In this document: in pieces, positions 1 to 44,400 of the stretch
Numbering within the stretch: position 1 is the first letter of the stretch
Layout: every line of letters begins with the position of its first letter
Source of the DNA: Auanema rhodensis
Taxonomy: Eukaryota; Animalia; Nematoda
Direction of reading: 5' to 3'
Assembly: GCA_964057225.1 (NCBI GenBank)
Contig: OZ059895.1
Location: 17,484,001-17,548,000, forward strand
Length of the DNA stretch: 64,000 nt
Notes under the pieces: generated by a model
The model's database searches: none
The model's input: the letters and a program-made list of their open reading frames with translations, nothing else
Told to the model about the DNA's origin: nothing
Program-made: the position numbers and the translations under genes

Positions 1-57
1 CAGTATTGTTAAAAGTGACAAAGTGATTATTATCGACAAATGAAAACAACTTATCAA

Positions 58-2175
58 GCCTCATTGGCTCAGGAGCAGAGCGTCTGTCTAGTCGATTCCA
101 GCTTGAGGCATCTTTTTAGACTTTCTCAAACTATTTTTAGGATTTATTCGTGCTTCTCGAAGCTTTTACTTCAGGTTACATCTTCTCTTATTCATTCGAA
201 TGAAATATTTTACTTCAATACGGAGCAGTATTGTTAAAAGTGACAAAGTGATTATTATCGACAAATGAAAACAAATTATTAAGCCTCATTGGCTCAGAGG
301 CAGAGCGTCTGTCTAGTCGATTCCAGCATGAGGCATCGTTTTAGACTTTCTCAAACTATTTTTAGGATTCATTCGTGCTTCTCAAAGCTTTTACTTCAGG
401 TTACATCTTCTCTCATTCATTCGAATGAAATATTTTACTTCAATACGGAGCAGTATTGTTAAAAGTGACAAAGTGATTATTATCGACAAATGAAAACAAC
501 TTATCAAGCCTCATTGGCTCAGGGGCAGAGCGTCTGTCTAGTAAACAGAAGGTCGCTGGTTCGATTCCAGCATGAGGCATCGTTTTAGACTTTTTCAAAA
601 TATTTTGAAGATTAATTCGTGCTTCTTGAAGCTTTTACTTCAGGTTACATCTTCTCTTATTCATTAGAATGAAATATTTTACTTCAATACGGAGCAGTAT
701 TGTTAAAATTGACAAAGTGATTATTATCGACAAAAGAAAACAACTTATCAAGCTTCATTGGCTCAGGGGCAGAGCGTCTGTCTAGTCGATTCCAGCATGA
801 GGCATCGTTTTAGACTTTCTCAAACTATTTTGAGGATTAATTCGTGCTTCTTGAAGCTTTTACTTCAGTTTACATCTTCTCTTATTCATTCGAATGAAAT
901 ATTTTACTTGAATAAGGAGCAGTATTGTTGAAAGTGACTAAGAGATTATTATCGACAAATGAAAATAACTTATCAAGCCTCATTGGCTCAGGGGCAGAGC
1001 GTCTGTCTAGTAAACATTCCAGCATGAGGCATCGTTTTAGACTTTCTCAAACTATTTTGAGGATTAATTCGTGCTTCTTGAAGCTTTTACTTCAGGTTAC
1101 ATCTTCTGTTATTCATTCGAATGAAATATTTTACTTCAATACGGAGCAGTATTGTTAAAAGTGACTAAGAGATTATAATAGAGAAATGAGAATAACTTAT
1201 CAAGCCTCATTGGCTCAGGGGCAGAGCGTCTGTCTAGTCGATTCCAGCATGAGGCATCGTTTTAGACTTTCTCAAACTATTTTGAAGATTAATTCGTGCT
1301 TCTTGAAGCTTTTACTTCAGGTTACATCTTCTGTTATTCATTCGAATGAAATATTTTACTTCAATACGGAGCAGTATTGTTAAAAGTGACTAAGAGATAA
1401 TAATAGAGAAATGAGAATAACTTATCAAGCCTCATTGGCTCAGGGGCAGAGCGTCTGTCTAGTCGATTCCAGCATGAGGCATCGTTTTAGACTTTCTCAA
1501 AACATTTTTAGGATTCATTCGTGCTTCTCGAAGCTTTTACTTCAGGTTACATCTTCTGTTATTCATTCGAATGAAATATTTTACTTCAATACGGAGCAGT
1601 ATTGTTAAAAGTGACTAAGAGATTATAATAGAGAAATGAGAATAACTTATCAAGCCTCATTGGCTCAGGGGCAGAGCGTCTGTCTAGTCGATTCCAGCAT
1701 GAGGCATCGTTTTAGACTTTCTCAAACTATTTTGAAGATTAATTCGTGCTTCTTGAAGCGTTTACTTCAGGTTACATCTTCTCTTATTCATTCGAATGAA
1801 ATATTTTACTTCAATATGGAGCAGTATTGTTAAAAGTGACAAAGTGATTATTATCGACAAATGAAAACAACTTATCAAGCCTCATTGGCTCAGGGCCAGC
1901 GTCTGTCTAGTAAACAGAAGGTCGCTGGTTCGATTCCAGCATGAGGCATCGTTTTAGACTTTTTCAAACTATTTTGAGGATTAATTCGTGCTTCTTGAAG
2001 CTTTTACTTCAGGTTACATCTTCTCTTATTCATTCGAATGAAATATTTTACTTCAATACGGAGCAGTATTGTTAAAAGTGACAAAGTGATTATTATCGAC
2101 AAATGAAAACAACTTATCAAGCCTCATTGGCTCAGGGGCAGAGCGTCTGTCTAGTAAACATTCCAGCATGAGGCA
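58..2175 (+). pseudogene. Internally deleted tRNA-Thr copies (19-bp deletion at 58, 283, 752, 1204, 1429, 1654; 17-bp deletion at 977, 2121)
   Basis: CTAGT|CGATTCC lacks tRNA nt 36-54 and CTAGTAAACA|TTCC lacks nt 41-57. The anticodon stem, T stem and B box are disrupted. Confidence 0.9.
508..579 (+). tRNA. tRNA-Thr(AGT), full length (representative copy)
   Basis: Cloverleaf: acceptor GCCTCAT/ATGAGGC, D stem GCTC/GAGC, anticodon stem TCTGT/ACAGA with loop CT-AGT-AA, T stem GCTGG/CCAGC with loop TTCGATT, discriminator A. A T-run follows. Confidence 0.95.
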
Positions 2176-2347
2176 TCTTTTTAGACTTTCTCAAACTATT
2201 TTTAGGATTCATTCGTGCTTCTCGAAGCTTTTACTTCAGGTTACATCTTCTGTTATTCATTCGAATGAAATATTTTACTTCAATACGGAGCAGTATTGTT
2301 AAAAGTGACAAAGTGATTATTATCGACAAATGAAAACAACTTATCAA

Positions 2348-2419
2348 GCCTCATTGGCTCAGGGGCAGAGCGTCTGTCTAGTAAACAGAAGGTCGCTGGT
2401 TCGATTCCAGCATGAGGCA
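2348..2419 (+). tRNA. tRNA-Thr(AGT), full length
   Basis: Same 72-nt cloverleaf as 508-579. Confidence 0.93.
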
Positions 2420-2706
2420 TCGTTTTAGACTTTTTCAAAATATTTTGAAGATTAATTCGTGCTTCTTGAAGCTTTTACGGCAGAGCGTCTGTCTAGTAAA
2501 CAGAAGGTCGCTGGTTCGATTCCAGCATGAGGCATCTTTTTAGACTTTCTCAAACTATTTTGAGGATCTATTCGTAGTTCTTAAAGCTTTTACTTCAGGT
2601 TACATCTTTTATTATTCAATCAAATGAAATCTTTATATTCAATATGTATACGCATTGTTGAAAGTGGCGCAGAGATTATAATCGAGAAATGAAAACGATT
2701 TATCAA

Positions 2707-4486
2707 GCCTCATTGGCTCAGGGGCAGAGCGTCTGTCTAGTAAACAGAAGGTCGCTGGTTCGATTCCAGCATGAGGCATCTTTTTAGAATTTCTAAAACT
2801 ATTTTGAGGATCTATTCGTAGTTCTTAAAGCTTTTACTTCAGGTTACATCTTTTCTTATTCAATCAAATGAAATCTTTATATTCAATATGTATACGCATT
2901 GTTGAAAGTGGCGCAGAGATTATAATCGAGAAATGAAAACGATTTATCAAGCCTCATTGGCTCAGGGGCAGAGCGTCTGTCTAGTAAACAGAAGGTCGCT
3001 GGTTCGATTCCAGCATGAGGCATCTTTTTAGAATTTCTAAAACTATTTTGAGGATCTATTCGTAGTTCTTAAAGCTTTTACTTCAGGTTACATCTTTTCT
3101 TATTCAATCAAATGAAATCTTTATATTCAATATGTATACGCATTGTTGAAAGTGGCGCAGAGATTATAATCGAGAAATGAAAACGATTTATCAAGCCTCA
3201 TTGGCTCAGGGGCAGAGCGTCTGTCTAGTAAACAGAAGGTCGCTGGTTCGATTCCAGCATGAGGCATCTTTTTAGAATTTCTAAAACTATTTTGAGGATC
3301 TATTCGTAGTTCTTAAAGCTTTTACTTCAGGTTACATCTTTTCTTATTCAATCAAATGAAATCTTTATATTCAATATGTATACGCATTGTTGAAAGTGGC
3401 GCAGAGATTATAATCGAGAAATGAAAACGATTTATCAAGCCTCATTGGCTCAGGGGCAGAGCGTCTGTCTAGTAAACAGAAGGTCGCTGGTTCGATTCCA
3501 GCATGAGGCATCTTTTTAGAATTTCTAAAACTATTTTGAGGATCTATTCGTAGTTCTTAAAGCTTTTACTTCAGGTTACATCTTTTCTTATTCAATCAAA
3601 TGAAATCTTTATATTCAATATGTATACGCATTGTTGAAAGTGGCGCAGAGATTATAATCGAGAAATGAAAACGATTTATCAAGCCTCATTGGCTCAGGGG
3701 CAGAGCGTCTGTCTAGTAAACAGAAGGTCGCTGGTTCGATTCCAGCATGAGGCATCTTTTTAGAATTTCTAAAACTATTTTGAGGATCTATTCGTAGTTC
3801 TTAAAGCTTTTACTTCAGGTTACATCTTTTCTTATTCAATCAAATGAAATCTTTATATTCAATATGTATACGCATTGTTGAAAGTGGCGCAGAGATTATA
3901 ATCGAGAAATGAAAACGATTTATCAAGCCTCATTGGCTCAGGGGCAGAGCGTCTGTCTAGTAAACAGAAGGTCGCTGCTTCGATTCCAGCCTGAGGCATC
4001 TTTTTAGAATTTCTAAAACTATTTTGAGGATCTATTCGTAGTTCTTAAAGCTTTTATTTCAGGTTACATCTTTTATTATTCAATCAAATGAAATCTTTAT
4101 ATTCAATATGTATACGCATTGTTGAAAGTGGCGCAGAGATTATAATCGAGAAATGAAAACAATTAATCAAGCCTCATTGGCTCAGGGGCAGAGCGTCTGT
4201 CTAGTAAACAGAAGGTCGCTGGTTCGATTCCAGCATGAGGCATCTTTTTAGACTTTCTCAAACTATTTTGAGGATTAATTTGTACTTCTTGAAACTTTTG
4301 CTTCAGGTTACATCTTCTCTTATTCATTCGAATGAAATATTTTACTTCAATACGGAGCAGTATTGTTAAAAGTGACAAAGTGATTATTATCGACAAATGA
4401 AAACAACTTGTTAAGCCTCATTGGCTCAGGGGCAGAGCGTCTGTCTAGTAAACAGAAGGTCGCTGGTTCGATTCCAGCATGAGACA
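2707..4486 (+). tRNA. Block of 8 full-length tRNA-Thr(AGT) genes (starts 2707, 2951, 3195, 3439, 3683, 3927, 4171, 4415)
   Basis: Intact 72-nt cloverleafs at exact 244-bp spacing. The copies at 3927 (T-stem and acceptor mismatches) and 4415 (acceptor mismatch) carry point variants. Confidence 0.93.
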
Positions 4487-5109
4487 TCGTTTTAGACTTT
4501 TTCAAACTATTTTGAGGATTAATTCGTGCTTCTTGACGCTTTTACTTCAGGTTACATCTTCTCTTAATCATTCAAATGAAATGTTTCAATTGAATATGTA
4601 CACGCATTGTTGAAAGTGACTAAGAGATTATTATCGACAAATGAAAATAACTTATCAAGCCTCATTGGCTCAGGGGCAGAGCGTCTGTCTAGTAAAATTC
4701 CAGCTTGAGGCATCTTTTTAGACTTTCTCAAACTATTTTTAGGATTTATTCGTGCTTCTCGAAGCTTTTACTTCAGGTTACATCTTCTCTTATTCATTCG
4801 AATGAAATATTTTACTTCAATACGGAGCAGTATTGTTAAAAGTGACAAAGTGATTATTATCGACAAATGAAAACAAATTATCAAGCCTCATTGGCTCAGA
4901 GGCAGAGCGTCTGTCTAGTCGATTCCAGCATGAGGCATCGTTTTAGACTTTCTCAAACTATTTTTAGGATTCATTCGTGCTTCTCAAAGCTTTTACTTCA
5001 GGTTACATCTTCTCTCATTCATTCGAATGAAATATTTTACTTCAATACGGAGCAGTATTGTTAAAAGTGACAAAGTGATTATTATCGACAAATGAAAACA
5101 ACTTATCAA

Positions 5110-5181
5110 GCCTCATTGGCTCAGGGGCAGAGCGTCTGTCTAGTAAACAGAAGGTCGCTGGTTCGATTCCAGCATGAGGCA
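5110..5181 (+). tRNA. tRNA-Thr(AGT), full length
   Basis: Same 72-nt cloverleaf. Confidence 0.93.
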
Positions 5182-6720
5182 TCGTTTTAGACTTTTTCAA
5201 AATATTTTGAAGATTAATTCGTGCTTCTTGAAGCTTTTACTTCAGGTTACATCTTCTCTTATTCATTAGAATGAAATATTTTACTTCAATACGGAGCAGT
5301 ATTGTTAAAATTGACAAAGTGATTATTATCGACAAAAGAAAACAACTTATCAAGCTTCATTGGCTCAGGGGCAGAGCGTCTGTCTAGTCGATTCCAGCAT
5401 GAGGCATCGTTTTAGACTTTCTCAAACTATTTTGAGGATTAATTCGTGCTTCTTGAAGCTTTTACTTCAGGTTACATCTTCTGTTATTCATTCAAATGAA
5501 ATATTTTACTTCAATACGGAGCAGTATTGTTAAAAGTGACTAAGAGATTATAATAGAGAAATGAGAATAACTTATCAAGCCTCATTGGCTCAGGGGCAGA
5601 GCGTCTGTCTAGTCGATTCCAGCATGAGGCATCGTTTTAGACTTTCTCAAACTATTTTGAAGATTAATTCGTGCTTCTTGAAGCTTTTACTTCAGGTTAC
5701 ATCTTCTGTTATTCATTCGAATGAAATATTTTACTTCAATACGGAGCAGTATTGTTAAAAGTGACTAAGAGATAATAATAGAGAAATGAGAATAACTTAT
5801 CAAGCCTCATTGGCTCAGGGGCAGAGCGTCTGTCTAGTCGATTCCAGCATGAGGCATCGTTTTAGACTTTCTCAAAACATTTTTAGGATTCATTCGTGCT
5901 TCTCGAAGCTTTTACTTCAGGTTACATCTTCTGTTATTCATTCGAATGAAATATTTTACTTCAATACGGAGCAGTATTGTTAAAAGTGACTAAGAGATTA
6001 TAATAGAGAAATGAGAATAACTTATCAAGCCTCATTGGCTCAGGGGCAGAGCGTCTGTCTAGTCGATTCCAGCATGAGGCATCGTTTTAGACTTTCTCAA
6101 ACTATTTTGAAGATTAATTCGTGCTTCTTGAAGCGTTTACTTCAGGTTACATCTTCTCTTATTCATTCGAATGAAATATTTTACTTCAATATGGAGCAGT
6201 ATTGTTAAAAGTGACAAAGTGATTATTATCGACAAATGAAAACAACTTATCAAGCCTCATTGGCTCAGGGCCAGCGTCTGTCTAGTAAACAGAAGGTCGC
6301 TGGTTCGATTCCAGCATGAGGCATCGTTTTAGACTTTTTCAAACTATTTTGAGGATTAATTCGTGCTTCTTGAAGCTTTTACTTCAGGTTACATCTTCTC
6401 TTATTCATTCGAATGAAATATTTTACTTCAATATGGAGCAGTATTGTTAAAAGTGACAAAGTGATTATTATCGACAAATGAAAACAACTTATCAAGCCTC
6501 ATTGGCTCAGGGCCAGCGTCTGTCTAGTAAACATTCCAGCATGAGGCATCTTTTTAGACTTTCTCAAACTATTTTTAGGATTCATTCGTGCTTCTCGAAG
6601 CTTTTACTTCAGGTTACATCTTCTGTTATTCATTCGAATGAAATATTTTACTTCAATACGGAGCAGTATTGTTAAAAGTGACAAAGTGATTATTATCGAC
6701 AAATGAAAACAACTTATCAA

Positions 6721-6792
6721 GCCTCATTGGCTCAGGGGCAGAGCGTCTGTCTAGTAAAGAGAAGGTCGCTGGTTCGATTCCAGCATGAGGCA
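6721..6792 (+). tRNA. tRNA-Thr(AGT), full length with anticodon-stem mismatch
   Basis: ACAGA is changed to AGAGA in the 3' strand of the anticodon stem. Confidence 0.75.
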
Positions 6793-7365
6793 TCGTTTTA
6801 GACTTTTTCAAAATATTTTGAAGATTAATTCGTGCTTCTTGAAGCTTTTACATCAGGTTACAACTTCTCTTATTCATTAGAATGAAATATTTTACTTCAA
6901 TACGGAGCAGTATTGTTAAAATTGACAAAGTGATTATTATCGACAAATGAAAACAACTTATCAAGCCTCATTGGCTCAGGGGCAGAGCGTCTGTCTAGTC
7001 GATTCCAGCATGAGGTATCGTTTTAGACTTTCTCAAACTATTTTGAGGATTAATTTGTACTTCTTGAAACTTTTGCTTCAGGTTACATCTTCTCTTATTC
7101 ATTCGAATGAAATATTTTACTTCAATACGGAGCAGTATTGTTAAAAGTGACAAAGTGATTATTATCGACAAATGAAAACAACTTGTTAAGCCTCATTGGC
7201 TCAGGGGCAGAGCGTCTGTCTAGTAAACATTCCAGCATGAGGCATCTTTTTAGACTTTCTCAAACTATTTTTAGGATTCATTCGTGCTTCTCGAAGCTTT
7301 TACTTCAGGTTACATCTTCTGTTATTCATTCGAATGAAATATTTTACTTCAATACGGAGCTAGAC

Positions 7366-8718
7366 ACTAGACAGACGCTGGCCCTGAGCCAATGAGGCTT
7401 GATAAGTTGTTTTCATTTGTCGATAATAATCACTTTGTCACTTTTAACAATACTGCTCCATATTGAAGTAAAATATTTCATTCGAATGAATAAGAGAAGA
7501 TGTAACCTGAAGTAAACGCTTCAAGAAGCACGAATTAATCTTCAAAATAGTTTGAGAAAGTCTAAAACGATGCCTCATGCTGGAATCGACTAGACAGACG
7601 CTCTGCCCCTGAGCCAATGAGGCTTGATAAGTTATTCTCATTTCTCTATTATAATCTCTTAGTCACTTTTAACAATACTGCTCCGTATTGAAGTAAAATA
7701 TTTCATTCGAATGAATAACAGAAGATGTAACCTGAAGTAAAAGCTTCGAGAAGCACGAATGAATCCTAAAAATGTTTTGAGAAAGTCTAAAACGATGCCT
7801 CATGCTGGAATCGACTAGACAGACGCTCTGCCCCTGAGCCAATGAGGCTTGATAAGTTATTCTCATTTCTCTATTATTATCTCTTAGTCACTTTTAACAA
7901 TACTGCTCCGTATTGAAGTAAAATATTTCATTCGAATGAATAACAGAAGATGTAACCTGAAGTAAAAGCTTCAAGAAGCACGAATTAATCCTCAAAATAG
8001 TTTGAGAAAGTCTAAAACGATGCCTCATGCTGGAATCGAACCAGCGACCTTCTGTTTACTAGACAGACGCTCTGCCCCTGAGCCAATGAGGCTTGATAAG
8101 TTGTTTTCATTTGTCGATAATAATCACTTTGTCACTTTTAACAATACTGCTCCGTATTGAAGTAAAATATTTCATTCGAATGAATAACAGAAGATGTAAC
8201 CTGAAGTAAAAGCTTCGAGAAGCACGAATGAATCCTAAAAATAGTTTGAGAAAGTCTAAAAAGATGCCTCATGCTGGAATGTTTACTAGACAGACGCTCT
8301 GCCCCTGAGCCAATGAGGCTTGATAAGTTGTTTTCATTTGTCGATAATAATCACTTTGTCACTTTTAACAATACTGCTCCGTATTGAAGTAAAATATTTC
8401 ATTCGAATGAATAAGAGAAGATGTAACCTGAAGTAAAAGCTTCAAGAAGCACGAATTAATCCTCAAAATAGTTTGAAAAAGTCTAAAACGATGCCTCATG
8501 CTGGAATCGAACCAGCGACCTTCTGTTTACTAGACAGACGCTGGCCCTGAGCCAATGAGGCTTGATAAGTTGTTTTCATTTGTCGATAATAATCACTTTG
8601 TCACTTTTAACAATACTGCTCCATATTGAAGTAAAATATTTCATTCGAATGAATAAGAGAAGATGTAACCTGAAGTAATTTTTACTAGACAGACGCTCTG
8701 CCCCTGAGCCAATGAGGC
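7366..8718 (-). pseudogene. Deleted or truncated tRNA-Thr copies on the minus arm (5' halves at 7366-7398 and 8681-8718; 19-bp deletion at 7571 and 7796; 17-bp deletion at 8265; D-loop variant at 8492)
   Basis: Reverse-complement versions of the same alleles. Two copies end at or just after the anticodon loop, at rearrangement junctions. Confidence 0.88.
8021..8092 (-). tRNA. tRNA-Thr(AGT), full length
   Basis: Reverse complement of the 72-nt cloverleaf. Confidence 0.93.
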
Positions 8719-8890
8719 TTGATAAATCGTTTTCATTTCTCGATTATAATCTCTGCGCCACTTTCAACAATGCGTATACATATTGAATATAAAGATTTCA
8801 TTTGATTGAATAAGAAAAGATGTAACCTGAAATAAAAGCTTTAAGAACTACGAATAGATCCTCAAAATAGTTTTAGAAATTCTAAAAAGA

Positions 8891-11402
8891 TGCCTCATGC
8901 TGGAATCGAACCAGCGACCTTCTGTTTACTAGACAGACGCTCTGCCCCTGAGCCAATGAGGCTTGATTAATTGTTTTCATTTCTCGATTATAATCTCTGC
9001 GCCACTTTCAACAATGCGTATACATATTGAATATAAAGATTTCATTTGATTGAATAAGAAAAGATGTAACCTGAAGTAAAAGCTTTAAGAACTACGAATA
9101 GATCCTCAAAATAGTTTTAGAAATTCTAAAAAGATGCCTCATGCTGGAATCGAACCAGCGACCTTCTGTTTACTAGACAGACGCTCTGCCCCTGAGCCAA
9201 TGAGGCTTGATAAATTGTTTTCATTTCTCGATTATAATCACTTTGTCACTTTTAACAATACTGCTTCGTATTGAAGTAAAATATTTCATTCGAATGAATA
9301 AGAGAAGATGTAACCTGAAGTAAAAGCTTCGAGAAGCACGAATGAATCCTAAAAATAGTTTGAGAAAGTCTAAAAAGATGCCTCATGCTGGAATCGAACC
9401 AGCGACCTTCTGTTTACTAGACAGACGCTCTGCCCCTGAGCCAATGAGGCTTGATTAATTGTTTTCATTTCTCGATTATAATCTCTGCGCCACTTTCAAC
9501 AATGCGTATACATATTGAATATAAAGATTTCATTTGATTGAATAATAAAAGATGTAACCTGAAATAAAAGCTTTAAGAACTACGAATAGATCCTCAAAAT
9601 AGTTTTAGAAATTCTAAAAAGATGCCTCAGGCTGGAATCGAAGCAGCGACCTTCTGTTTACTAGACAGACGCTCTGCCCCTGAGCCAATGAGGCTTGATA
9701 AATCGTTTTCATTTCTCGATTATAATCTCTGCGCCACTTTCAACAATGCGTATACATATTGAATATAAAGATTTCATTTGATTGAATAAGAAAAGATGTA
9801 ACCTGAAGTAAAAGCTTTAAGAACTACGAATAGATCCTCAAAATAGTTTTAGAAATTCTAAAAAGATGCCTCATGCTGGAATCGAACCAGCGACCTTCTG
9901 TTTACTAGACAGACGCTCTGCCCCTGAGCCAATGAGGCTTGATAAATTGTTTTCATTTCTCGATTATAATCACTTTGTCACTTTTAACAATACTGCTTCG
10001 TATTGAAGTAAAATATTTCATTCGAATGAATAAGAGAAGATGTAACCTGAAGTAAAAGCTTCGAGAAGCACGAATGAATCCTAAAAATAGTTTGAGAAAG
10101 TCTAAAAAGATGCCTCATGCTGGAATCGAACCAGCGACCTTCTGTTTACTAGACAGACGCTCTGCCCCTGAGCCAATGAGGCTTGATTAATTGTTTTCAT
10201 TTCTCGATTATAATCACTTTGTCACTTTTAACAATACTGCTCCGTATTGAAGTAAAATATTTCATTCGAATGAATAAGAGAAGATGTAACCTGAAGTAAA
10301 AGCTTCGAGAAGCACGAATTAATCCTCAAAATAGTTTGAAAAAGTCTAAAACGATGCCTCATGCTGGAATCGAACCAGCGACCTTCTGTTTACTAGACAG
10401 ACGCTCTGCCCCTGAGCCAATGAGGCTTGATAAATCGTTTTCATTTCTCGATTATAATCTCTGCGCCACTTTCAACAATGCGTATACATATTGAATATAA
10501 AGATTTCATTTGATTGAATAAGAAAAGATGTAACCTGAAGTAAAAGCTTTAAGAACTACGAATAGATCCTCAAAATAGTTTTAGAAATTCTAAAAAGATG
10601 CCTCATGCTGGAATCGAACCAGCGACCTTCTGTTTACTAGACAGACGCTCTGCCCCTGAGCCAATGAGGCTTGATAAATCGTTTTCATTTCTCGATTATA
10701 ATCTCTGCGCCACTTTCAACAATGCGTATACATATTGAATATAAAGATTTCATTTGATTGAATAAGAAAAGATGTAACCTGAAGTAAAAGCTTTAAGAAC
10801 TACGAATAGATCCTCAAAATAGTTTTAGAAATTCTAAAAAGATGCCTCATGCTGGAATCGAACCAGCGACCTTCTGTTTACTAGACAGACGCTCTGCCCC
10901 TGAGCCAATGAGGCTTGATAAATCGTTTTCATTTCTCGATTATAATCTCTGCGCCAGTTTCAACAATGCGTATACATATTGAATATAAAGATTTCATTTG
11001 ATTGAATAAGAAAAGATGTAACCTGAAGTAAAAGCTTTAAGAACTACGAATAGATCCTCAAAATAGTTTTAGAAATTCTAAAAAGATGCCTCATGCTGGA
11101 ATCGAACCAGCGACCTTCTGTTTACTAGACAGACGCTCTGCCCCTGAGCCAATGAGGCTTGATAAATTGTTTTCATTTCTCGATTATAATCTCTGCGCCA
11201 CTTTCAACAATGCGTATACATATTGAATATAAAGATTTCATTTGATTGAATAAGAAAAGATGTAACCTGAAGTAAAAGCTTTAAGAACTACGAATAGATC
11301 CTCAAAATAGTTTTAGAAATTCTAAAAAGATGCCTCATGCTGGAATCGAACCAGCGACCTTCTGTTTACTAGACAGACGCTCTGCCCCTGAGCCAATGAG
11401 GC
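8891..11402 (-). tRNA. Block of 11 full-length tRNA-Thr(AGT) genes (left coordinates 8891, 9135, 9379, 9623, 9867, 10111, 10355, 10599, 10843, 11087, 11331)
   Basis: Intact cloverleafs at 244-bp spacing. The 9623 copy has the same two substitutions as the plus-strand copy at 3927. Confidence 0.93.
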
Positions 11403-11641
11403 TTGATAAATCGTTTTCATTTCTCGATTATAATCTCTGCGCCAGTTTCAACAATGCGTATACATATTGAATATAAAGATTTCATTTGATTGAATAAGAA
11501 AAGATGTAACCTGAAGTAAAAGCTTTAAGAACTACGAATAGATCCTCAAAATAGTTTTAGAAATTCTAAAAAGATGCCTCATGCTGGAATCGAACCAGCG
11601 ACCTTCTGTTTACTAGACAGACGCTCTGCCCCTGAGCCAAT

Positions 11642-11978
11642 CGTTCCATTCGGAAATCAATACGTAGCAGGCGGGTTAGAATCAGACGACATGAGGCTGA
11701 GAGAGGACGACACGCCCTTCATATGGAACACAGACTTCAGCTTTGCCTTATGGAATGACTATGGATGGTTGGTCTTCCTTTCTTAGCTCTCTTTTACTTT
11801 ATATCTTTATGTAGACTTATATAACTTATTGTAATCATGTAGACATAATAAACCTTTCTTTCTCGAGTCTTATGTTTATCCATTATGCTCTTTATCTACC
11901 GCTACATCTGGAATACTATCACACTCATCTTGTAGGCTTTATTGGTCTATAGGATCGACGTGAGAGCATAACGGAACG
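11642..11978 (+). repeat. 5' LTR (337 bp)
   Basis: Begins CGTTCC and ends GGAACG (6-bp terminal inverted repeat). Contains TATATAA (~11818) and AATAAA (~11847). Appears identical to 14635-14971. Confidence 0.93.
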
Positions 11979-11991
11979 TGGAAGTTCCACC
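11979..11991 (+). promoter_or_regulatory. Primer-binding site, probably tRNA-Gln
   Basis: TGGAAGTTCCACC immediately follows the LTR. It matches 12/13 nt of TGGAGGTTCCACC, the complement of the metazoan tRNA-Gln 3' end (...GGTGGAACCT-CCA). Confidence 0.7.
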
Positions 11992-13323
11992 TCGAACATT
12001 TTTATCTTGATTTCTTGACTATTTTCTCTTATATTTCGTTATTTTTAATACAATTCATTGAATCTGAATTCTCTTATATCTCTACACCATCTACTCCATG
12101 TCTTAACACAATACGGTGGGGCCAACAACGTTTAAAAGGGAACAGATGCAAGGACCACTCCTTTTGGAGATGGATTTTATATTTTTTGAAACTGAAGTTA
12201 TATTTTCCCGTTTGTTCACAATTTTCTGTCTGTCTGAACCCAACAATTTTTATATCCTTGCTGTTAACATCAAATACTCTGTTACCCGAACTCGAAGCAT
12301 TTTAGAGGACCCTAGGATGAATTAGTGAACAAATTCACCCAAGGATAATTTTTATTGAGATTTATGCCCACACTTTCCCCTTTTAAGGATTGATTTTGGC
12401 TTCGAGGAAAGAATAGCCACGGTTATTTCTTTATTTTTGTGGATGAAACAATTTTGCGCACCAAATTGAGATTATTTCATATTTTGCGATCAGGACTATT
12501 TTATTTTGCGTTACATTTCTGTTCAGACAACTTTTTGCCATTAACATCCGAAAATATTTTGATAACGCATTGAATTTACACGGGAAACCTCACCGAAATG
12601 GGAGGAATATTATGAAAAGTGAATTTTAAGATCGCTATAGTCCGAAAAATCCTGTACAATTTTACGAACTGAATTATTATTAGTGATTGTCTATCAGGTC
12701 GTGTTGGCTTAAGCATATCAGTTTGGATTTTCTCCCCTTACTATATGTCACCTTCCTCATACCGTTATTGTTGTTTTGAAGCATAAGACTCATTCCTAAA
12801 CACCATAATTCTTTAAATATAGTTATTGTAATCTTTAGTCATCTATTCCTAACCATAATTTTAAAACTAGATTTCTGATCATGATGGGACTACGGTACTC
12901 ATTCGTTTTCCAAATTGCTTCCTTAAAAGAGTAATGCTATTACGAATGTACATTATGAAAACCGCTAAAATCCTTTGAACATTTACCAAAGTCCATTTTC
13001 GTGGCATTTTCGATCACTCGTGAGTCCAAGAAGATCAGAATTGTCAGAAAAAGAAAAAAAATGGGAATAAGGACTAATGAGATTGCTCAGGCATCAATCA
13101 AGTGAGCACTGAACATTTTTGAACATATACAAACTGGTTGAATTATATACATTTAAGAATATTAAATTGGAGAGCGAACAAAGTCCAAATTTTCATACGG
13201 TAGTAGGCGGATCTCTGTTAAAGGCCACAACTTAGATTCATTCCTTAACGCCGACTATACAAACCAGTTACTCACAGCTTTCTCACCCCTTTTCCAAAAC
13301 TCCTTATCCATAACACTCATTAA

Positions 13324-13937
13324 CGTCCCAAAATCCCCCACGTTACTAAACACTCAAGGTTTTTCCAAACCAAGAGCGCTACGAAAGTGGATAAGCGATT
13401 TCGATCAGCTGTACCTCTCAGTACACGAACTGATTTTGATCTGCGAGACTCAGCTCCACTCACCCGAAGCCGAGCTCGCGCACAAAGCATCGCTATAATC
13501 GAAGACGAGCAGAAAGCCGAGCACAAAACCGACAAATTCTTTACTCCTCGTGCAGGCACTTATTCACCTACTGAACAATTAAGCGACGAGGATTACGTAC
13601 CACCAGGAGGAGAAGAAACATCCATCATAGTGGAAGAACAAACACCAGTTACTGCTAAGAAGTCAACAACGTTGAAGGAAACATGGTACAACTCAAGAAT
13701 CCATTTGGAAAAATTCAAGACGTACACAAAGACAATCTCAAACTTTTTGAACGCAAAATGGACCATACAATCGCTCAAAACACGCGATCAAATACAACGA
13801 CTTATGACACGGACGACGACAGCGATATTGAGATCATAAAAGTCATAAATGGTAACGATAACTATGACTCTACTGAAGAAACAGAACCAGAAGACCCATC
13901 GGACCAAAATTGGCTACCACCAAGAAGAAGACGATGA
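13324..13937 (+). pseudogene. Remnant gag-like 5' segment fused out of frame to a Gypsy integrase C-terminus
   Basis: Frame 1 gives ...APLTRSRARAQ..., a low-complexity Gag-N-terminus-like stretch with no ATG. From 13659 another frame gives EVNNVEGNMVQLKNPFGKIQDVHKDNLKLF, resembling the second half of the integrase GPY/F module (V..V.G...L....G....VH.D.LK.F), followed by an acidic tail. Confidence 0.6.
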
Positions 13938-14622
13938 AAGAAATAATTTCGAGATTGATAAAATTATTGTAAAACTTTGTATCAACTCTCTTTTAAAAAA
14001 CCAGAGCTATTAATATTATTATATCATTGAAAAACTTGAGTAAGACGAGATGTAAGCTAGTAATGAAAAAGCATTTCAGTTTCAAAGCATATATGATTAT
14101 AAAACTTCATCAATTTCAAATAATTTCCCGTAAATAAAGAAGAAATGAAAGATAAGAGACATTATATTGCATATTCATCTGAGCAACAGTCCTTATCAAG
14201 TAGTTAATGATTCAATTCCGGAAATTATATGGGATTTAGTTTAATTTTTTTTATTATTACAATTCGCTTTGAATACGCTGAAGAAACATGCTAGCTCCAT
14301 CGATAATATAGCATGACTCTCGTTTCTCTATACTCAAACAAGTTAGACATGCAGCGTCGTGCCTAAAAAGCTATTTTGCGCACTCTCGCTGACAAAATAT
14401 AGCCCTGGTATTCAAAAAGATTGTTTTATTCCTTAATATTCATGTATTTTCAAATAATTTTTATTAAATTCTTTTCAGATAATATTGTTTAACATTATAT
14501 TGTAATTTATCTTTACTATTTTTATGTTAACATTGTAATTTTTATTTTTTTAAAACTAAACCTTCTGCTACGATTGAAACAAGCCACATATTTTGCTATT
14601 CGCGAGGACGCGACATAAACTC

Positions 14623-14634
14623 GAAAAAATGGCA
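14623..14634 (+). promoter_or_regulatory. Candidate polypurine tract
   Basis: GAAAAAATGGCA lies directly upstream of the 3' LTR; it is short and imperfect. Confidence 0.45.
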
Positions 14635-14971
14635 CGTTCCATTCGGAAATCAATACGTAGCAGGCGGGTTAGAATCAGACGACATGAGGCTGAGAGAGGA
14701 CGACACGCCCTTCATATGGAACACAGACTTCAGCTTTGCCTTATGGAATGACTATGGATGGTTGGTCTTCCTTTCTTAGCTCTCTTTTACTTTATATCTT
14801 TATGTAGACTTATATAACTTATTGTAATCATGTAGACATAATAAACCTTTCTTTCTCGAGTCTTATGTTTATCCATTATGCTCTTTATCTACCGCTACAT
14901 CTGGAATACTATCACACTCATCTTGTAGGCTTTATTGGTCTATAGGATCGACGTGAGAGCATAACGGAACG
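14635..14971 (+). repeat. 3' LTR (337 bp)
   Basis: Direct repeat of 11642-11978; no differences seen by eye. Confidence 0.93.
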
Positions 14972-15152
14972 CAATGAGGCTTGATAAATCGTTTTCATTT
15001 CTCGATTATAATCTCTGCGCCACTTTCAACAATGCGTATACATATTGAATATAAAGATTTCATTTGATTGAATAAGAAAAGATGTAACCTGAAGTAAAAG
15101 CTTTAAGAACTACGAATAGATCCTCAAAATAGTTTTAGAAATTCTAAAAAGA

Positions 15153-17420
15153 TGCCTCATGCTGGAATCGAACCAGCGACTTTCTGTTTACTAGACAGAC
15201 GCTCTGCCCCTGAGCCAATGAGGCTTGATAAATCGTTTTCATTTCTCGATTATAATCTCTGCGCCACTTTCAACAATGCGTATACATATTGAATATAAAG
15301 ATTTCATTTGATTGAATAATAAAAGATGTAACCTGAAGTAAAAGCTTTAAGAACTACGAATAGATCCTCAAAATAGTTTGAGAAAGTCTAAAAAGATGCC
15401 TCATGCTGGAATCGAACCAGCGACCTTCTGTTTACTAGACAGACGCTCTGCCCCTGAGCCAATGAGGCTTGATAAATCGTTTTCATTTCTCGATTATAAT
15501 CTCTGCGCCACTTTCAACAATGCGTATACATATTGAATATAAAGATTTCATTTGATTGAATAATAAAAGATGTAACCTGAAGTAAAAGCTTTAAGAAGTA
15601 CGAATAGATCCTCAAAATAGTTTTAGAAATTCTAAAAAGATGCCTCATGCTGGAATCGAACCAGCGACCTTCTGTTTACTAGACAGACGCTCTGCCCCTG
15701 AGCCAATGAGGCTTGATAAATTGTTTTCATTTCTCGATTATAATCTCTGCGCCACTTTCAACAATGCGTATACATATTGAATATAAAGATTTCATTTGAT
15801 TGAATAATAAAAGATGTAACCTGAAGTAAAAGCTTTAAGAACTACGAATAGATCCTCAAAATAGTTTGAGAAAGTCTAAAAAGATGCCTCATGCTGGAAT
15901 CGAACCAGCGACCTTCTGTTTACTAGACAGACGCTCTGCCCCTGAGCCAATGAGGCTTGATAAATCGTTTTCATTTCTCGATTATAATCTCTGCGCCACT
16001 TTCAACAATGCGTATACATATTGAATATAAAGATTTCATTTGATTGAATAATAAAAGATGTAACCTGAGGTAAAAGCTTTAAGAACTACGAATAGATCCT
16101 CAAAATAGTTTTAGAAATTCTAAAAAGATGCCTCATGCTGGAATCGAACCAGCGACCTTCTGTTTACTAGACAGACGCTCTGCCCCTGAGCCAATGAGGC
16201 TTGATAAATCGTTTTCATTTCTCGATTATAATCTCTGCGCCACTTTCAACAATGCGTATACATATTGAATATAAAGATTTCATTTGATTGAATAAGAAAA
16301 GATGTAACCTGAAGTAAAAGCTTTAAGAACTACGAATAGATCCTCAAAATAGTTTTAGAAATTCTAAAAAGATGCCTCATGCTGGAATCGAACCAGCGAC
16401 CTTCTGTTTACTAGACAGACGCTCTGCCCCTGAGCCAATGAGGCTTGATAAATCGTTTTCATTTCTCGATTATAATCTCTGCGCCACTTTCAACAATGCG
16501 TATACATATTGAATATAAAGATTTCATTTGATTGAATAAGAAAAGATGTAACCTGAAGTAAAAGCTTTAAGAACTACGAATAGATCCTCAAAATAGTTTT
16601 AGAAATTCTAAAAAGATGCCTCATGCTGGAATCGAACCAGCGACCTTCTGTTTACTAGACAGACGCTCTGCCCCTGAGCCAATGAGGCTTGATAAATCGT
16701 TTTCATTTCTCGATTATAATCTCTGCGCCAGTTTCAACAATGCGTATACATATTGAATATAAAGATTTCATTTGATTGAATAAGAAAAGATGTAACCTGA
16801 AGTAAAAGCTTTAAGAACTACGAATAGATCCTCAAAATAGTTTTAGAAATTCTAAAAAGATGCCTCATGCTGGAATCGAACCAGCGACCTTCTGTTTACT
16901 AGACAGACGCTCTGCCCCTGAGCCAATGAGGCTTGATAAATTGTTTTCATTTCTCGATTATAATCTCTGCGCCACTTTCAACAATGCGTATACATATTGA
17001 ATATAAAGATTTCATTTGATTGAATAAGAAAAGATGTAACCTGAAGTAAAAGCTTTAAGAACTACGAATAGATCCTCAAAATAGTTTTAGAAATTCTAAA
17101 AAGATGCCTCATGCTGGAATCGAACCAGCGACCTTCTGTTTACTAGACAGACGCTCTGCCCCTGAGCCAATGAGGCTTGATAAATCGTTTTCATTTCTCG
17201 ATTATAATCTCTGCGCCAGTTTCAACAATGCGTATACATATTGAATATAAAGATTTCATTTGATTGAATAAGAAAAGATGTAACCTGAAGTAAAAGCTTT
17301 AAGAACTACGAATAGATCCTCAAAATAGTTTTAGAAATTCTAAAAAGATGCCTCATGCTGGAATCGAACCAGCGACCTTCTGTTTACTAGACAGACGCTC
17401 TGCCCCTGAGCCAATGAGGC
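15153..17420 (-). tRNA. Block of 10 full-length tRNA-Thr(AGT) genes (left coordinates 15153, 15397, 15641, 15885, 16129, 16373, 16617, 16861, 17105, 17349)
   Basis: Intact cloverleafs at 244-bp spacing, each followed by a T5 Pol III terminator. The 15153 copy has a variable-loop G>A change. Confidence 0.93.
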
Positions 17421-17885
17421 TTGATAAATTGTTTTCATTTCTCGATTATAATCTCTGCGCCACTTTCAACAATGCGTATACATATTGAATATAAAGATTT
17501 TTATCACGTTTAACAATACTTATACGCCTAGAAAGTTGAAAGTCCTCAAAGTCCTAAGACCTTATCTCATTTGTCGATTATAGATAGATTCTCTTTGTCA
17601 CCTTATCAATTCTGTTAGTATGTAGGCAGATGATTTATTTTTAAGTTTAATATTGAAAAGTAGCATATTTATTGAACTTCAAGAATTAACAAAGATGCAA
17701 TAACGTCATACTCGTATTTAACACCGATTTCTGGTAGGGAAGTTTCATATGAGCTTTGCGGAGTTTCTTTTTCACATTTTTGGTTTAAGTGTTTATAAAA
17801 TGTTTCTCATGCAATTATCCTGAGAGTGTGATTCACATATTGGCAATTGGTTCGAGATTTAATCTATGTTCTAGAAGTGTTTTTT

Positions 17886-41411: not shown

Positions 41412-44400
41412 CTATTGTGTAGGACGATAATGAAGAGGATGCTCTGATGATATCATAGGCAACGAAGGAGAATGCAAATTTACGCGGACAGGGAACCGTT
41501 TTCCAGCGATGTCTAATTCATATCGTCCCCTTTGAATAAATTCAGTTGATACTCCGAAATCTTTGTTTTCTACATAAGCAATGCAAACCTAAAATAAGAA
41601 TCATAAAAAAGGTAATACAAATACACGATTTATACTTGGCAACCCAGAGTAAATCCGTATGCAGCAGACGTAGTAACTCCTACAGGCTTTCCATCCCTAA
41701 ATGTTTTAGATAAATATTATAATATATGATAGTAAACCTGAATAATGTTTCGCCTCCTTGAGGCCAAGGATCCGTTTCTTTGTCATGCTTGTCCACCATT
41801 AATTGCACAAAACGTTTAGAAACACCTCTTTCAAGTTGTTTTTCTAACGCTGCTTTTCCGATAAAATCTTTCTAAAATGAATTTAAATTAATTCGTTAAA
41901 TAAGGTAAACAGATACTTTAAAATCTACACGGAAAGCTCTTCCACATTCCACAGGAGTCACAGTGGCGTTAATATCTTGTCCCCAATATACATAAAATTT
42001 CTCTATTCTGAGTTGTCTAAGGGTGTAATAGCCCGCATGTAACATGCTGTACTCTTCTCCAGCTTCTAGAATACGATCGTAAACGTTTTGCGCAACCTAA
42101 AAATGACCGGCATATAATTTACAATGGAATAAAGTTTCTAACCTCATTTGGTATATAGATAACCCATCCTAGTTCCCCACAATGTGTTACACTTATAGCT
42201 CGTATGCCTGTAGCCATACCAATATTTATATCCTTCAAAAAGTGGTTGAAATTCTCGAAAATCAAAAAAAAAACCTTGCAAGCAAATGTAGGGAAGTCTT
42301 GACTTCCCATTGACATTCCAGTAATATCAGACATTAGATAACGAGATGAAGGGCCAATAACATCTAGGGCTGTATACATTCCCGTGACATCTTGAACGTG
42401 TACGTTAGCACCAAGTTTTTTCACCCATTTCTTCATCCATGTCATGCACCTCTCTTGTTGGATAGTAGGGGCAACCATAAAAAAACTGAAACACTAGACA
42501 TAATAAATAAAGTAAAAATTACAACACCTTCTTTCCGAAATTCTACTCAGTGTACAATCTGTTACATATCCGCCTTGATCATGCTGCATTCCTGTATAAA
42601 CGGTTGTACCAATTGGTCTATCAATATTAGCCGAGCACAGGTATTGTAAGAATGTGACAGCATCCGGTCCCTGAAAGGAAAAAATGTATAAATTATAAAC
42701 GGATTCGAAATAAAATGCAACCAGTTCAATATAATGCTCAAATAACAATAACGTTGGCACGTGAAAACGTGTATGTTATGTATCAGTATTCTAACGATAC
42801 ATATACTCAAATTAGTAAAAAAAGACAAAACTGAATTACAGAAAACTATATAACTTACTGATATATCGAATTTACTGAAACTACTCATATCCATCAGTCC
42901 CACTCGTTCTCGACATGCTTCATATTCGGACGCAACTCTAAAAAAAATCAGTTGTCCAAAAGCATGTGATACACTTTTACCTTTCAAACCAAGAAGGTTT
43001 TCCCAAAAGAACATCCTGGCCTTGTTGCAAGGCATTTCTATCATTTTTAGCATTTCTTTCAAACCATAAAGGTCTCTCATATCTAAAAGAACATCCATAT
43101 CGATAGAACGAAACCAACAAGAATACCCCATTATTTCTCCGAAAACTGCTCCTGCATCACGAAGTTGATGATAAATAGGAGACATTCTCAAATTTCTAGC
43201 TGTATGACACTGATGTGAATGATACATGTTGGTGTATGTCATAGCAGCGATTTCAGGTACTCTCTCAACCAAATATTGTGTGTTCGCATGAAGTTCCAAA
43301 AAGCGGCCAATATCAACCCGAGCAACATCAATTTTTGGCACACTGTCACAAATCCAATCAGCCAAAATCTAAAATGGAAACCATGCATATGAAAAATAAT
43401 GAAAACGTTACTTGTCCCAATCCACCGGCCAGTGACAACCCTTGTCCATTCAGTCCGTTGAGAACATAATATCCTTTGGCCTATATGGTAATTGAATAAA
43501 ATTGATGAAGAATTGAATTCAGTTACTTGACTAGTTTCACCAACACAAGGAGCTTTATCTGGTGTGTATGATTCCATACCACAAATTAAGTCACCATGTT
43601 CAACTTCTCCCAACATGGGACATCGATATAGTAGCTTATCTAATGAAGCTTCTAAAATAAGTTGTATCCATACTGAAGTACTTTATAAAGATAGCATACC
43701 AAATTTATCCCAATCTGGCTCGGGGTAATGCCACTGACCAAATTCCACTCCTTGTCTTTGCAACGGCTTCACACCTTCTTCATGGAAACCAGTACATAAC
43801 GTTTTAAATCCAGTAGCTCTGATCATTATATTTCCGTCCAAGTCATTAAAAACTATTGAAAAAAACTTTTTAGACGCTAGTCATGCAGAACATACCTGGA
43901 GTTGAATCCGAAACTAATCCGGTTGGTAGTTTTGCAGTATGAATATAAGAATAAGTACAAGGATAAGCAGCCGTTTGTAAATGACGATGATGTAAGCCTT
44001 TCACGGGCAAAGTTCCTGTCCACTAAAACAAATGTAAAAAAAACAGTTTAAAACACCTTAATCTTTACCATGCCACTAGCATCGACAAAGTTGGGAGTTT
44101 CAACAAGACCACAGGAAGTTTTAACAGCATATACTTGCTTCTCGTCTCCTAATAAAACTTCTTGAACTTCACATCCCTCAAATACTTCAGCTCCTTAAAT
44201 TCAGGTTTCAGTAAAATAATTCAAAAACAAAAAAAACCATTTTCTTGAGCAAGTCGAGCTAATTCTTGGCACAAGGCTACTTGATCAAGTGCAATGTCTT
44301 CAGGTGAAAACAAAGCCAACTGAAACAAGACTGTACAAACAAAAGATACTTTGCACTATACCTGCACGTCTTCTGTTTGTAGATATGGCCAGCGCTGAAG

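Follow-up and report, generated by a model that had tools for sequence, protein, structure and literature searches.

Rearrangement breakpoints in a tandem array of tRNA-Thr(AGU) genes of the nematode Auanema rhodense appear to favour the loops of DNA hairpins, and they do so in the spacer partners of the junctions as well as in the genes. This regularity is new here and is moderately supported. The array fills positions 1-17500 of the window, by which we mean the whole stretch of 64,000 nt that was analysed (C3:17484001-17548000 in a 181-Mb, 112-contig assembly). It was recognised with Tandem Repeats Finder (TRF) and ARAGORN and consists of a 72-nt gene in a 244-bp unit. The window holds only its right end: the whole array extends over ~205 kb (C3:17296963-17501500) and comprises ~636 units, of which 608 are on the + strand and 28 are on the - strand. 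The whole-array analysis covered 214 kb, including 194 kb upstream of the window. A 13-nt motif of the gene occurs 658 times genome-wide, with 634 of these copies inside the array, and the gene copies examined elsewhere in the genome were intact. The germline assembly of A. rhodense comprises 180 Mb with 19,554 annotated tRNAs (preprint 10.64898/2026.08.27.747507). The intact tRNA-Thr(AGU) scores 69 bits against Rfam RF00005 and contains an A box and a B box (nt 51-61), which form a promoter as predicted from the sequence.

We propose that the lesions arose in structure-prone DNA, namely the tRNA cloverleaf and hairpins of the spacer, that they were sealed by polymerase-theta-type end joining and that the products were spread by unequal exchange. 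We give this account an even chance of being correct.

Junctions of the structural lesions

Alignment of 623 regular units, unit by unit against the intact gene and with left/right normalisation of deletions, identified 360 intact units, 154 with a 19-bp deletion, 102 with a 17-bp deletion and one with an 18-bp deletion. The 19-bp deletion removes nt 35-53 with a 1-nt T homology and the 17-bp deletion removes nt 40-56 with a 1-nt A homology. In the window they are present in 14 and 5 copies, respectively, together with the single 18-bp allele, and all of these counts agree with those of a preliminary description of this DNA. The two deletions are the only common large indels across the whole array. 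Each has one invariant junction, and apparent deletion variants turned out to be the same two junctions with a neighbouring substitution. Because each deletion retains bases that the other lost, they represent two events and neither was derived from the other. The 17-bp allele predominates in the left 70 kb of the array. The origin of the 18-bp allele is ambiguous, and this includes the previously suggested derivation from the 17-bp allele: its 3' part (positions 57-244) shows no difference from a few 19-bp-deleted units, and in a segmental duplication it occupies the place that corresponds to one of these units (window position 58). Spacer indels are confined to 1-3 bp in the whole array, each in at most 12 copies, apart from one complex unit, and the earlier statement that the spacer lacks short indels holds for the window, where none was found. 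There is no indication of a functional mini-RNA from the deleted units, as they fold no better than shuffled sequences (z -1.8 and -1.6).

Alongside the A-type units, the B-type units form a subfamily with 31 diagnostic spacer differences, in which every copy is intact and very homogeneous; it makes up the inverted right arm (8681-17500, - strand) and two short + strand blocks (2479-4170 and C3:17483326-17483990). Several A/B mosaic units suggest conversion or exchange between the arms. At the inversion, the + strand spacer ends at 7360, followed by an insert of 5-6 nt and by the tRNA in reverse complement (nt 35..1) at 7366-7398, from where the array continues on the - strand. The insert is identical to the adjacent GTCTAG. 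The insert at 8679-8680, with a length of 2 nt, is too short to judge templating. Both the inversion with its locally templated insert and the 8680 junction with its 2-nt insert had been described before and were confirmed, and two lesions were added: a 2-bp deletion in the D loop and a duplication junction at 2478/2479, which occurs twice via a segmental duplication. In the complex unit C3:17362505, tRNA nt 10 is joined to spacer position 160 and a spacer deletion of ~34 bp carries a templated insert, copied from the neighbouring TTCAATA. The junctions at 2479 and 8680 have TTAC at spacer positions 128-131 in common and may be the two ends of one B-type block insertion. Likewise, a single complex event may have produced both the inversion and the 8680 junction, which lie at the two ends of one 1.3-kb segment.

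In Caenorhabditis elegans, a 1-nt homology is present at 80% of simple junctions, templated inserts occur in 7%, and Cas9 deletions have a median length of ~13 bp (PMC4490562). The 1-nt homologies, the locally templated insert and the losses of 17-19 bp match this pattern, which bears out the polymerase-theta-type scars noted in the preliminary description.

The array records seven or eight structural events in all, of which about three to five, counted as independent, have a breakpoint at nt 34-40. We compared the breakpoints of the events with a uniform null using a scan statistic, for which the scan width was picked after the data had been seen. Four of six events within 6 nt gave P=0.0007, three of five events gave P=0.014, and the 19-bp and 17-bp deletions alone gave P=0.045. 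Resting on few events, the cluster at nt 34-40 is probably beyond chance. Of the pile-up of breakpoints 3' of the anticodon that had been proposed earlier, a nominally significant cluster therefore stands, with only ~3-5 independent events and a post hoc scan width. The tRNA body as a whole is over-represented as well: 12 of 18 breakpoints lie in the 72-nt gene, which accounts for 29.5% of the unit (P=0.0012).

Hairpin loops at the breakpoints

Taken as single-stranded DNA, each strand of the tRNA is predicted to form a cloverleaf (-17.5 and -14.1 kcal/mol; z -4.9 and -3.8, respectively). Using a perfect stem of at least 5 and a loop of 3-8 as criterion, the unit holds exactly six inverted repeats, which are the anticodon arm, the T arm and the spacer hairpins H3 to H6 (Table 1). 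Their loop probability is 0.7-0.9 in the single-stranded-DNA ensemble.

The junctions lead from one of these loops, or its immediate vicinity, to another. The 19-bp deletion connects the anticodon loop with the T loop, and the 17- and 18-bp deletions run from 1-3 nt past the anticodon loop to the T loop. The inversion joins the anticodon loop to the H6 loop, and the 8680 junction joins a point 1 nt past the anticodon loop to the H4 loop. At the 2479 junction, the D loop is linked to a point 1 nt past the H4 loop, and in the complex unit tRNA nt 10 is linked to the H5 loop, with H6 as the left edge of the ~34-bp spacer deletion. Altogether, eight of the 16 breakpoints of eight events are in loops compared with an expectation of 16% (binomial P=0.002), a value that was equalled by 9-12 of 243 circular shifts. 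Twelve of the 16 are at most 1 nt from a loop compared with 21% expected (P=7e-6; 1-3 of 243 circular shifts). A threshold-free comparison gave a mean hairpin-loop probability of 0.49 at the breakpoints versus 0.24 unit-wide (P=0.002; 9 of 243 shifts).

Several points weigh against this interpretation. The loop rule was found post hoc and from only 7-8 events, some of them perhaps linked. Three of the five anticodon-arm breakpoints are 1-3 nt outside the loop, the circular-shift control reaches only P about 0.04 in its strict version, and the spacer hairpins are short, AT-rich and weak. The same direction is taken by a tRNA-Ala(UGC) array with a 248-bp unit on the - strand of C7, found by pattern search: 542 units have the wild-type spacing from anticodon stem to T loop and none has a shorter one. 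Because tRNA-Ala(UGC) must fold alike and is without such deletions, the process that joins anticodon to T loop is either rare or filtered, and such deletions are not something that tRNA arrays of this genome commonly undergo. The check proposed earlier, whether other arrays break at the homologous position, gave a negative result in this array, the only one tested.

The tRNA-Ala(UGC) array spans C7:4177029-4210710 and beyond. A variant unit with a CGC anticodon and the B-box change TTCAATT recurs in it, for example at 4204717, 4205461 and 4208433.

In the proposed mechanism, single-stranded DNA would become exposed on the rare occasions when DNA broke or forks stalled (~3-5 times at the anticodon arm and ~7-8 times in total). 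This DNA would fold, with the tRNA cloverleaf as the strongest fold of the unit in addition to four spacer hairpins of 5-6 bp, and ends would be cut, trimmed or annealed at the exposed loop nucleotides. Polymerase-theta-type repair, the usual end-joining route in the nematode germline, would then join them and leave 1-nt homologies and templated inserts. The 19-bp and 17-bp deletions would each have been born once and then have spread by unequal exchange with intact neighbours. The anticodon arm may be used most because it belongs to the most stable fold, perhaps beside a bound transcription complex. We infer both the folding of single strands and polymerase theta as the cause of the lesions. 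Mutations and breakpoints are known to concentrate in the loops of short inverted repeats (PMC5737083; PMC4937311).

Spread of the deleted units and competing explanations

The deleted units are interleaved with intact ones in higher-order patterns. One 19-bp-deleted unit followed by five intact units is repeated 20 times, the combination with three intact units 13 times and that with one intact unit 21 times, and spacer divergence shows a lag-2/4/6 periodicity in part of the array. Furthermore, 25 spacer substitution alleles are present in at least 100 copies. Because they are interleaved with intact units and spacer alleles are equally abundant, the deleted alleles behave as ordinary passengers of unequal exchange. 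Cut resistance, which had been put forward to explain their amplification, is not needed; nor is selection for lower tRNA dosage, although it may have occurred. The intact tRNA parts differ from the consensus at a rate of 0.27% versus 5.9% in the spacers and are thus ~20 times less variable. Where gene parts are retained in deleted units, their variability exceeds that of intact genes 3-6 times, which fits the decay of dead copies. The 20-fold conservation is hard to attribute to selection on each of 360 copies; alternatives are conversion or an amplification biased to active units.

It is also conceivable, though quite unlikely, that the tRNA genes themselves initiate recombination in the array, each unit carrying a break-prone site in the form of cloverleaf hairpins, a fork barrier of RNA polymerase III (Pol III), or both. 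In yeast, the Fob1 fork barrier drives copy-number change of the ribosomal DNA. If tRNA genes acted in this way, most breaks would lead to unequal sister exchange, which would expand and homogenise the array, and the loop-to-loop deletions would mark the rare occasions on which exchange failed and ends were joined instead. This could account for the ~19,500 tRNA genes found in arrays in this genome.

Among the competing explanations, a protein barrier is possible but unlikely. TFIIIC on the B box and the Pol III initiation complex would stall forks, which would collapse at ~nt 35-40 and be repaired by end joining. This is consistent with the A and B boxes, intact in sequence, with the excess of breakpoints in the tRNA body and with the anticodon arm, which was used five times and more than the other hairpins. 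In yeasts, Pol III genes form polar barriers to replication forks and are hotspots of Rad52, which was credited to the initiation complex (PMC3613587). However, a barrier leaves unexplained why the partner breakpoints in the spacer are in hairpin loops, and the tRNA-Ala(UGC) array has a like promoter layout without such deletions in its 542 units. Moreover, fork pausing and factor occupancy in this organism are only predicted.

Chance combined with a survival filter would act at the level of the products, and we consider it unlikely. Only deletions that clip the B box and silence the gene would be tolerated or favoured, through lower tRNA-Thr dosage or Pol III load, and then amplified, so that the cluster would be partly luck. 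There are just two amplified alleles, and if a deletion of ~18 bp must hit the B box, two left ends at most 5 nt apart have a probability of ~0.3. Under the uniform null, these two alone give P=0.045. The low variability of the tRNA relative to the spacer indicates that selection or conversion acts on the gene, and the faster decay of the retained tRNA parts also conforms to this explanation. In contrast, the non-amplified singleton junctions at 7360 and 8680 break at nt 35 and nt 38 as well, the loop coincidence of the partner breakpoints is not predicted, and the 25 neutral-looking spacer variants match the frequencies of the deleted alleles, so that no selective push is needed.

The singletons (the 18-bp allele, the 7360 inversion and the 8680 junction) could be assembly or read artefacts, which would leave two real events and would be compatible with the other explanations. 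Each of the three occurs once, and fold-back chimeras are a known artefact of long reads. The coverage given in the preprint (10.64898/2026.08.27.747507) is ~29-fold in most repeat-rich regions versus 236-fold in gene-rich ones, as general figures for such regions. Nevertheless, we regard artefacts as very unlikely: the junctions bear the repair scars expected of real events, a templated insert and a 2-nt insert, and the inverted arm extends over a further 10 kb, where it has a sequence subtype of its own and carries a young long terminal repeat (LTR) insertion.

The preliminary description had named, as one possible agent, a sequence-specific nuclease, from a selfish element or from the DNA-elimination machinery; it would cut in or near nt 41-53 and let cut-resistant deleted alleles spread. 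Nt 41-53 are indeed lost in five of five lesions, the anticodon arm forms the centre of the most symmetrical partial palindrome in the unit (10 of 14 arm positions), and A. rhodense eliminates DNA with a nuclease-like system directed to a palindromic motif (preprint 10.64898/2026.08.27.747507). We nonetheless find this explanation hardly credible. Recurrent cutting of ~360 targets would be expected to generate many differing junctions; instead, 257 deleted units contain two junction types and one singleton, with 360 intact targets left. Deleted units were amplified jointly with intact units, such deletions are absent from the 542 units of the tRNA-Ala(UGC) array, and an endonuclease element at this tRNA position is lacking, as insertions at nt 35-40 were found in none of the ~636 units. 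The 10/14 palindrome is within the range of shuffled sequences (mean maximum 9.1, maximum 11), and no 29-nt (14+1+14) palindrome beyond the shuffled level is present in the unit when symmetry, rather than the published motif matrix, is scored. The motif scan of the preprint yielded 28 break sites and 19 other strong matches genome-wide, not hundreds at a 244-bp spacing. Finally, no run of two or more TTAGGC telomere repeats was detected on either strand of the 214 kb, which represent assembled sequence and not somatic reads.

Replication slippage was rejected, as the homology is only 1 nt, and so was an RNA-mediated origin (cDNA of modified tRNA with jumps at 37 and 58) as the main cause, as two junctions run into spacer DNA.

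Array features, insertions and comparison with known systems

The positions of the array features are collected in Table 1.

Table 1. Positions of genes, deletion alleles, junctions and hairpins of the tRNA-Thr(AGU) array; window coordinates of H4, H5 and H6 are those of a reference A-type unit.
Feature	Window position	Unit or gene position (nt)	Strand	Remarks
+ strand array, right-hand 7.4 kb	1..7360		+	Intact, 19-bp-, 17-bp- and 2-bp-deleted units mixed
H4 spacer hairpin	627..642	120-135, loop 125-130	+	5-bp stem; partner site of the 8680 and 2479 junctions
H5 spacer hairpin	660..673	153-166, loop 158-161	+	Partner of the nt 10/spacer 160 junction in C3:17362505
H6 spacer hairpin	685..702	178-195, loop 184-189	+	6-bp stem; partner site of the inversion
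17-bp deletion allele, example	977..1031		+	Point 2-3 nt 3' of anticodon loop joined to T loop
19-bp deletion allele, example	1204..1256		+	Anticodon loop joined to T loop
2-bp deletion allele	1879..1948	20-21	+	D loop/stem; about 5-7 copies in array
Duplication junction	2478..2479		+	A-type spacer 131 joined to tRNA nt 17 (D loop); B-type block next
Reference intact tRNA-Thr(AGU), 72 nt	2707..2778		+	Anticodon nt 33-35
Anticodon arm, reference gene	2732..2748	26-42	+	Hairpin arm
T arm, reference gene	2754..2770	48-64	+	Hairpin arm
18-bp allele, singleton	4659..4712		+	Nt 39-56 lost; B-type block meets A-type units here
Inversion junction insert	7361..7365			Copy of adjacent GTCTAG, between + strand spacer 187/188 (H6 loop) and tRNA after nt 35
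Inverted 1.3-kb segment, A-type units	7366..8678		-	One singleton junction at each end
'87-bp' junction, 2-nt insert	8679..8680			B-type tRNA nt 1-38 (8681-8718, - strand) joined to A-type spacer 128 (H4 loop)
Inverted arm, right end of array	8681..17500		-	Intact, very homogeneous B-type units; LTR element interrupts at 11642-14972
Anticodon arm hairpin		loop 31-37		Inverted-repeat search
T arm hairpin		loop 53-59		Inverted-repeat search
H3 spacer hairpin		loop 93-96		Inverted-repeat search

Interrupted units were catalogued across the array and have insertions at unit positions about 5-8, 21-26, 48-53, 72-77 and 140-178, which are LTR-type or unidentified. The LTR element at window positions 11642-14972 has a length of 3.33 kb, LTRs that are 100% identical (at least 300 nt) and CG...CG ends, and is located at nt 5-8 of a tRNA gene with the 4-bp target duplication CAAT (+ strand). 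Its family interrupts the array at least three more times at differing unit positions, with lengths of 11.7 kb, 12.3 kb and 1.56 kb (units C3:17369362, 17383495 and 17406813). Three further units, C3:17366350 (629-bp unit), 17302683 (2739-bp unit) and 17326156 (7406-bp unit), each contain an unidentified insertion between unit positions 162 and 178, a short distance 3' of CATTCGAATG, which is a perfect palindrome of 10 nt. The LTR family also used ATTC at unit positions 152-155.

A retrovirus-like element of 7.75 kb is present in two copies with 99.87% identity (C3:17425891-17433643 and C3:17467658-17475413). Its 1210-aa frame contains an integrase-tail domain (DUF5641) as well as a fusion glycoprotein domain of the Phlebovirus G2 type. 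Each copy lies in a tRNA gene, with the 6-bp target duplications GAGCGT (nt 21-26) and GCTGGT (nt 48-53). As a tRNA-targeting agent this element was rejected: by chance, two of two copies would fall in the gene with a probability of 0.09, and nt 35-40 was hit by neither copy.

At tRNA position 39, in the anticodon stem and adjoining the breakpoint cluster, several otherwise intact units have C-to-G or C-to-A changes, which were found in two separate arrays, including window positions 6721-6792 and the array at C3:12.64 Mb. Ordinary protein-coding DNA is less than 25 kb away from the array: an open frame at window positions 42562-43365 (- strand) has FAO_M and aminomethyltransferase-type domains and represents an exon similar to sarcosine or dimethylglycine dehydrogenase.

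The present evidence for the loop rule comes from a small sample and is suggestive. If the rule holds in other arrays, it would provide a simple account of where tandem arrays of the nematode germline break and rejoin. It would further tie the turnover of satellites to DNA secondary structure and polymerase-theta repair, and an unknown tRNA-directed nuclease would no longer be needed. The array also offers a naturally accumulated collection of repair scars from an organism with 120 Mb of tandem repeats in its germline.

With the Sequence For Elimination (SFE) sites, at which programmed DNA elimination breaks the chromosomes of Auanema and Oscheius, the region shares the organism and breaks near the centre of a partly palindromic sequence. 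The two differ in that the SFE comprises a conserved palindrome of 29 nt, in the middle of which telomeres are added, whereas the tRNA site is a hairpin with a 5-bp stem, carries no telomere repeats and is not among the reported strong motif matches. The yeast Pol III fork barriers (PMC3613587; review PMC5368702) resemble the array in the over-representation of the tRNA gene body among the breakpoints, and a feature here is that the ~600 genes of the main arm all have the same direction. Yeast damage, however, was mapped to the gene and not to an interval of nucleotides, and the barrier considered here is read from sequence.

Single-nucleotide homologies, locally templated inserts and deletions of ~10-20 bp agree with the end-joining signature of C. 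elegans. A. rhodense is another rhabditid species, in which the role of polymerase theta is suggested by the scars, and hairpin-loop position is not part of the signature as far as it is given in the published portion considered here. The short-inverted-repeat hotspots are similar to our findings in that breakpoints are enriched at hairpin-forming repeats, most of all in the loop part. They differ in stem length, with 5-6 bp here and the strongest effect at stems of 7-15 bp in the human study, and in that two of the hairpins here are tRNA arms and the data are 16 breakpoints from one array.

Satellite-like tandem tRNA arrays, as outlined for A. rhodense (preprint 10.64898/2026.08.27.747507), have the same head-to-tail units of a single isoacceptor, higher-order repeats, a conserved gene and drifting spacers. 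The tRNA-Thr array is unusual in the 41% of its units that are dead through just two deletions, which are absent from the tRNA-Ala(UGC) array tested. Taken together, the region adds a further case to kinds of fragility and repair that are already known, and what it contributes beyond them is the loop-to-loop regularity of the junctions.

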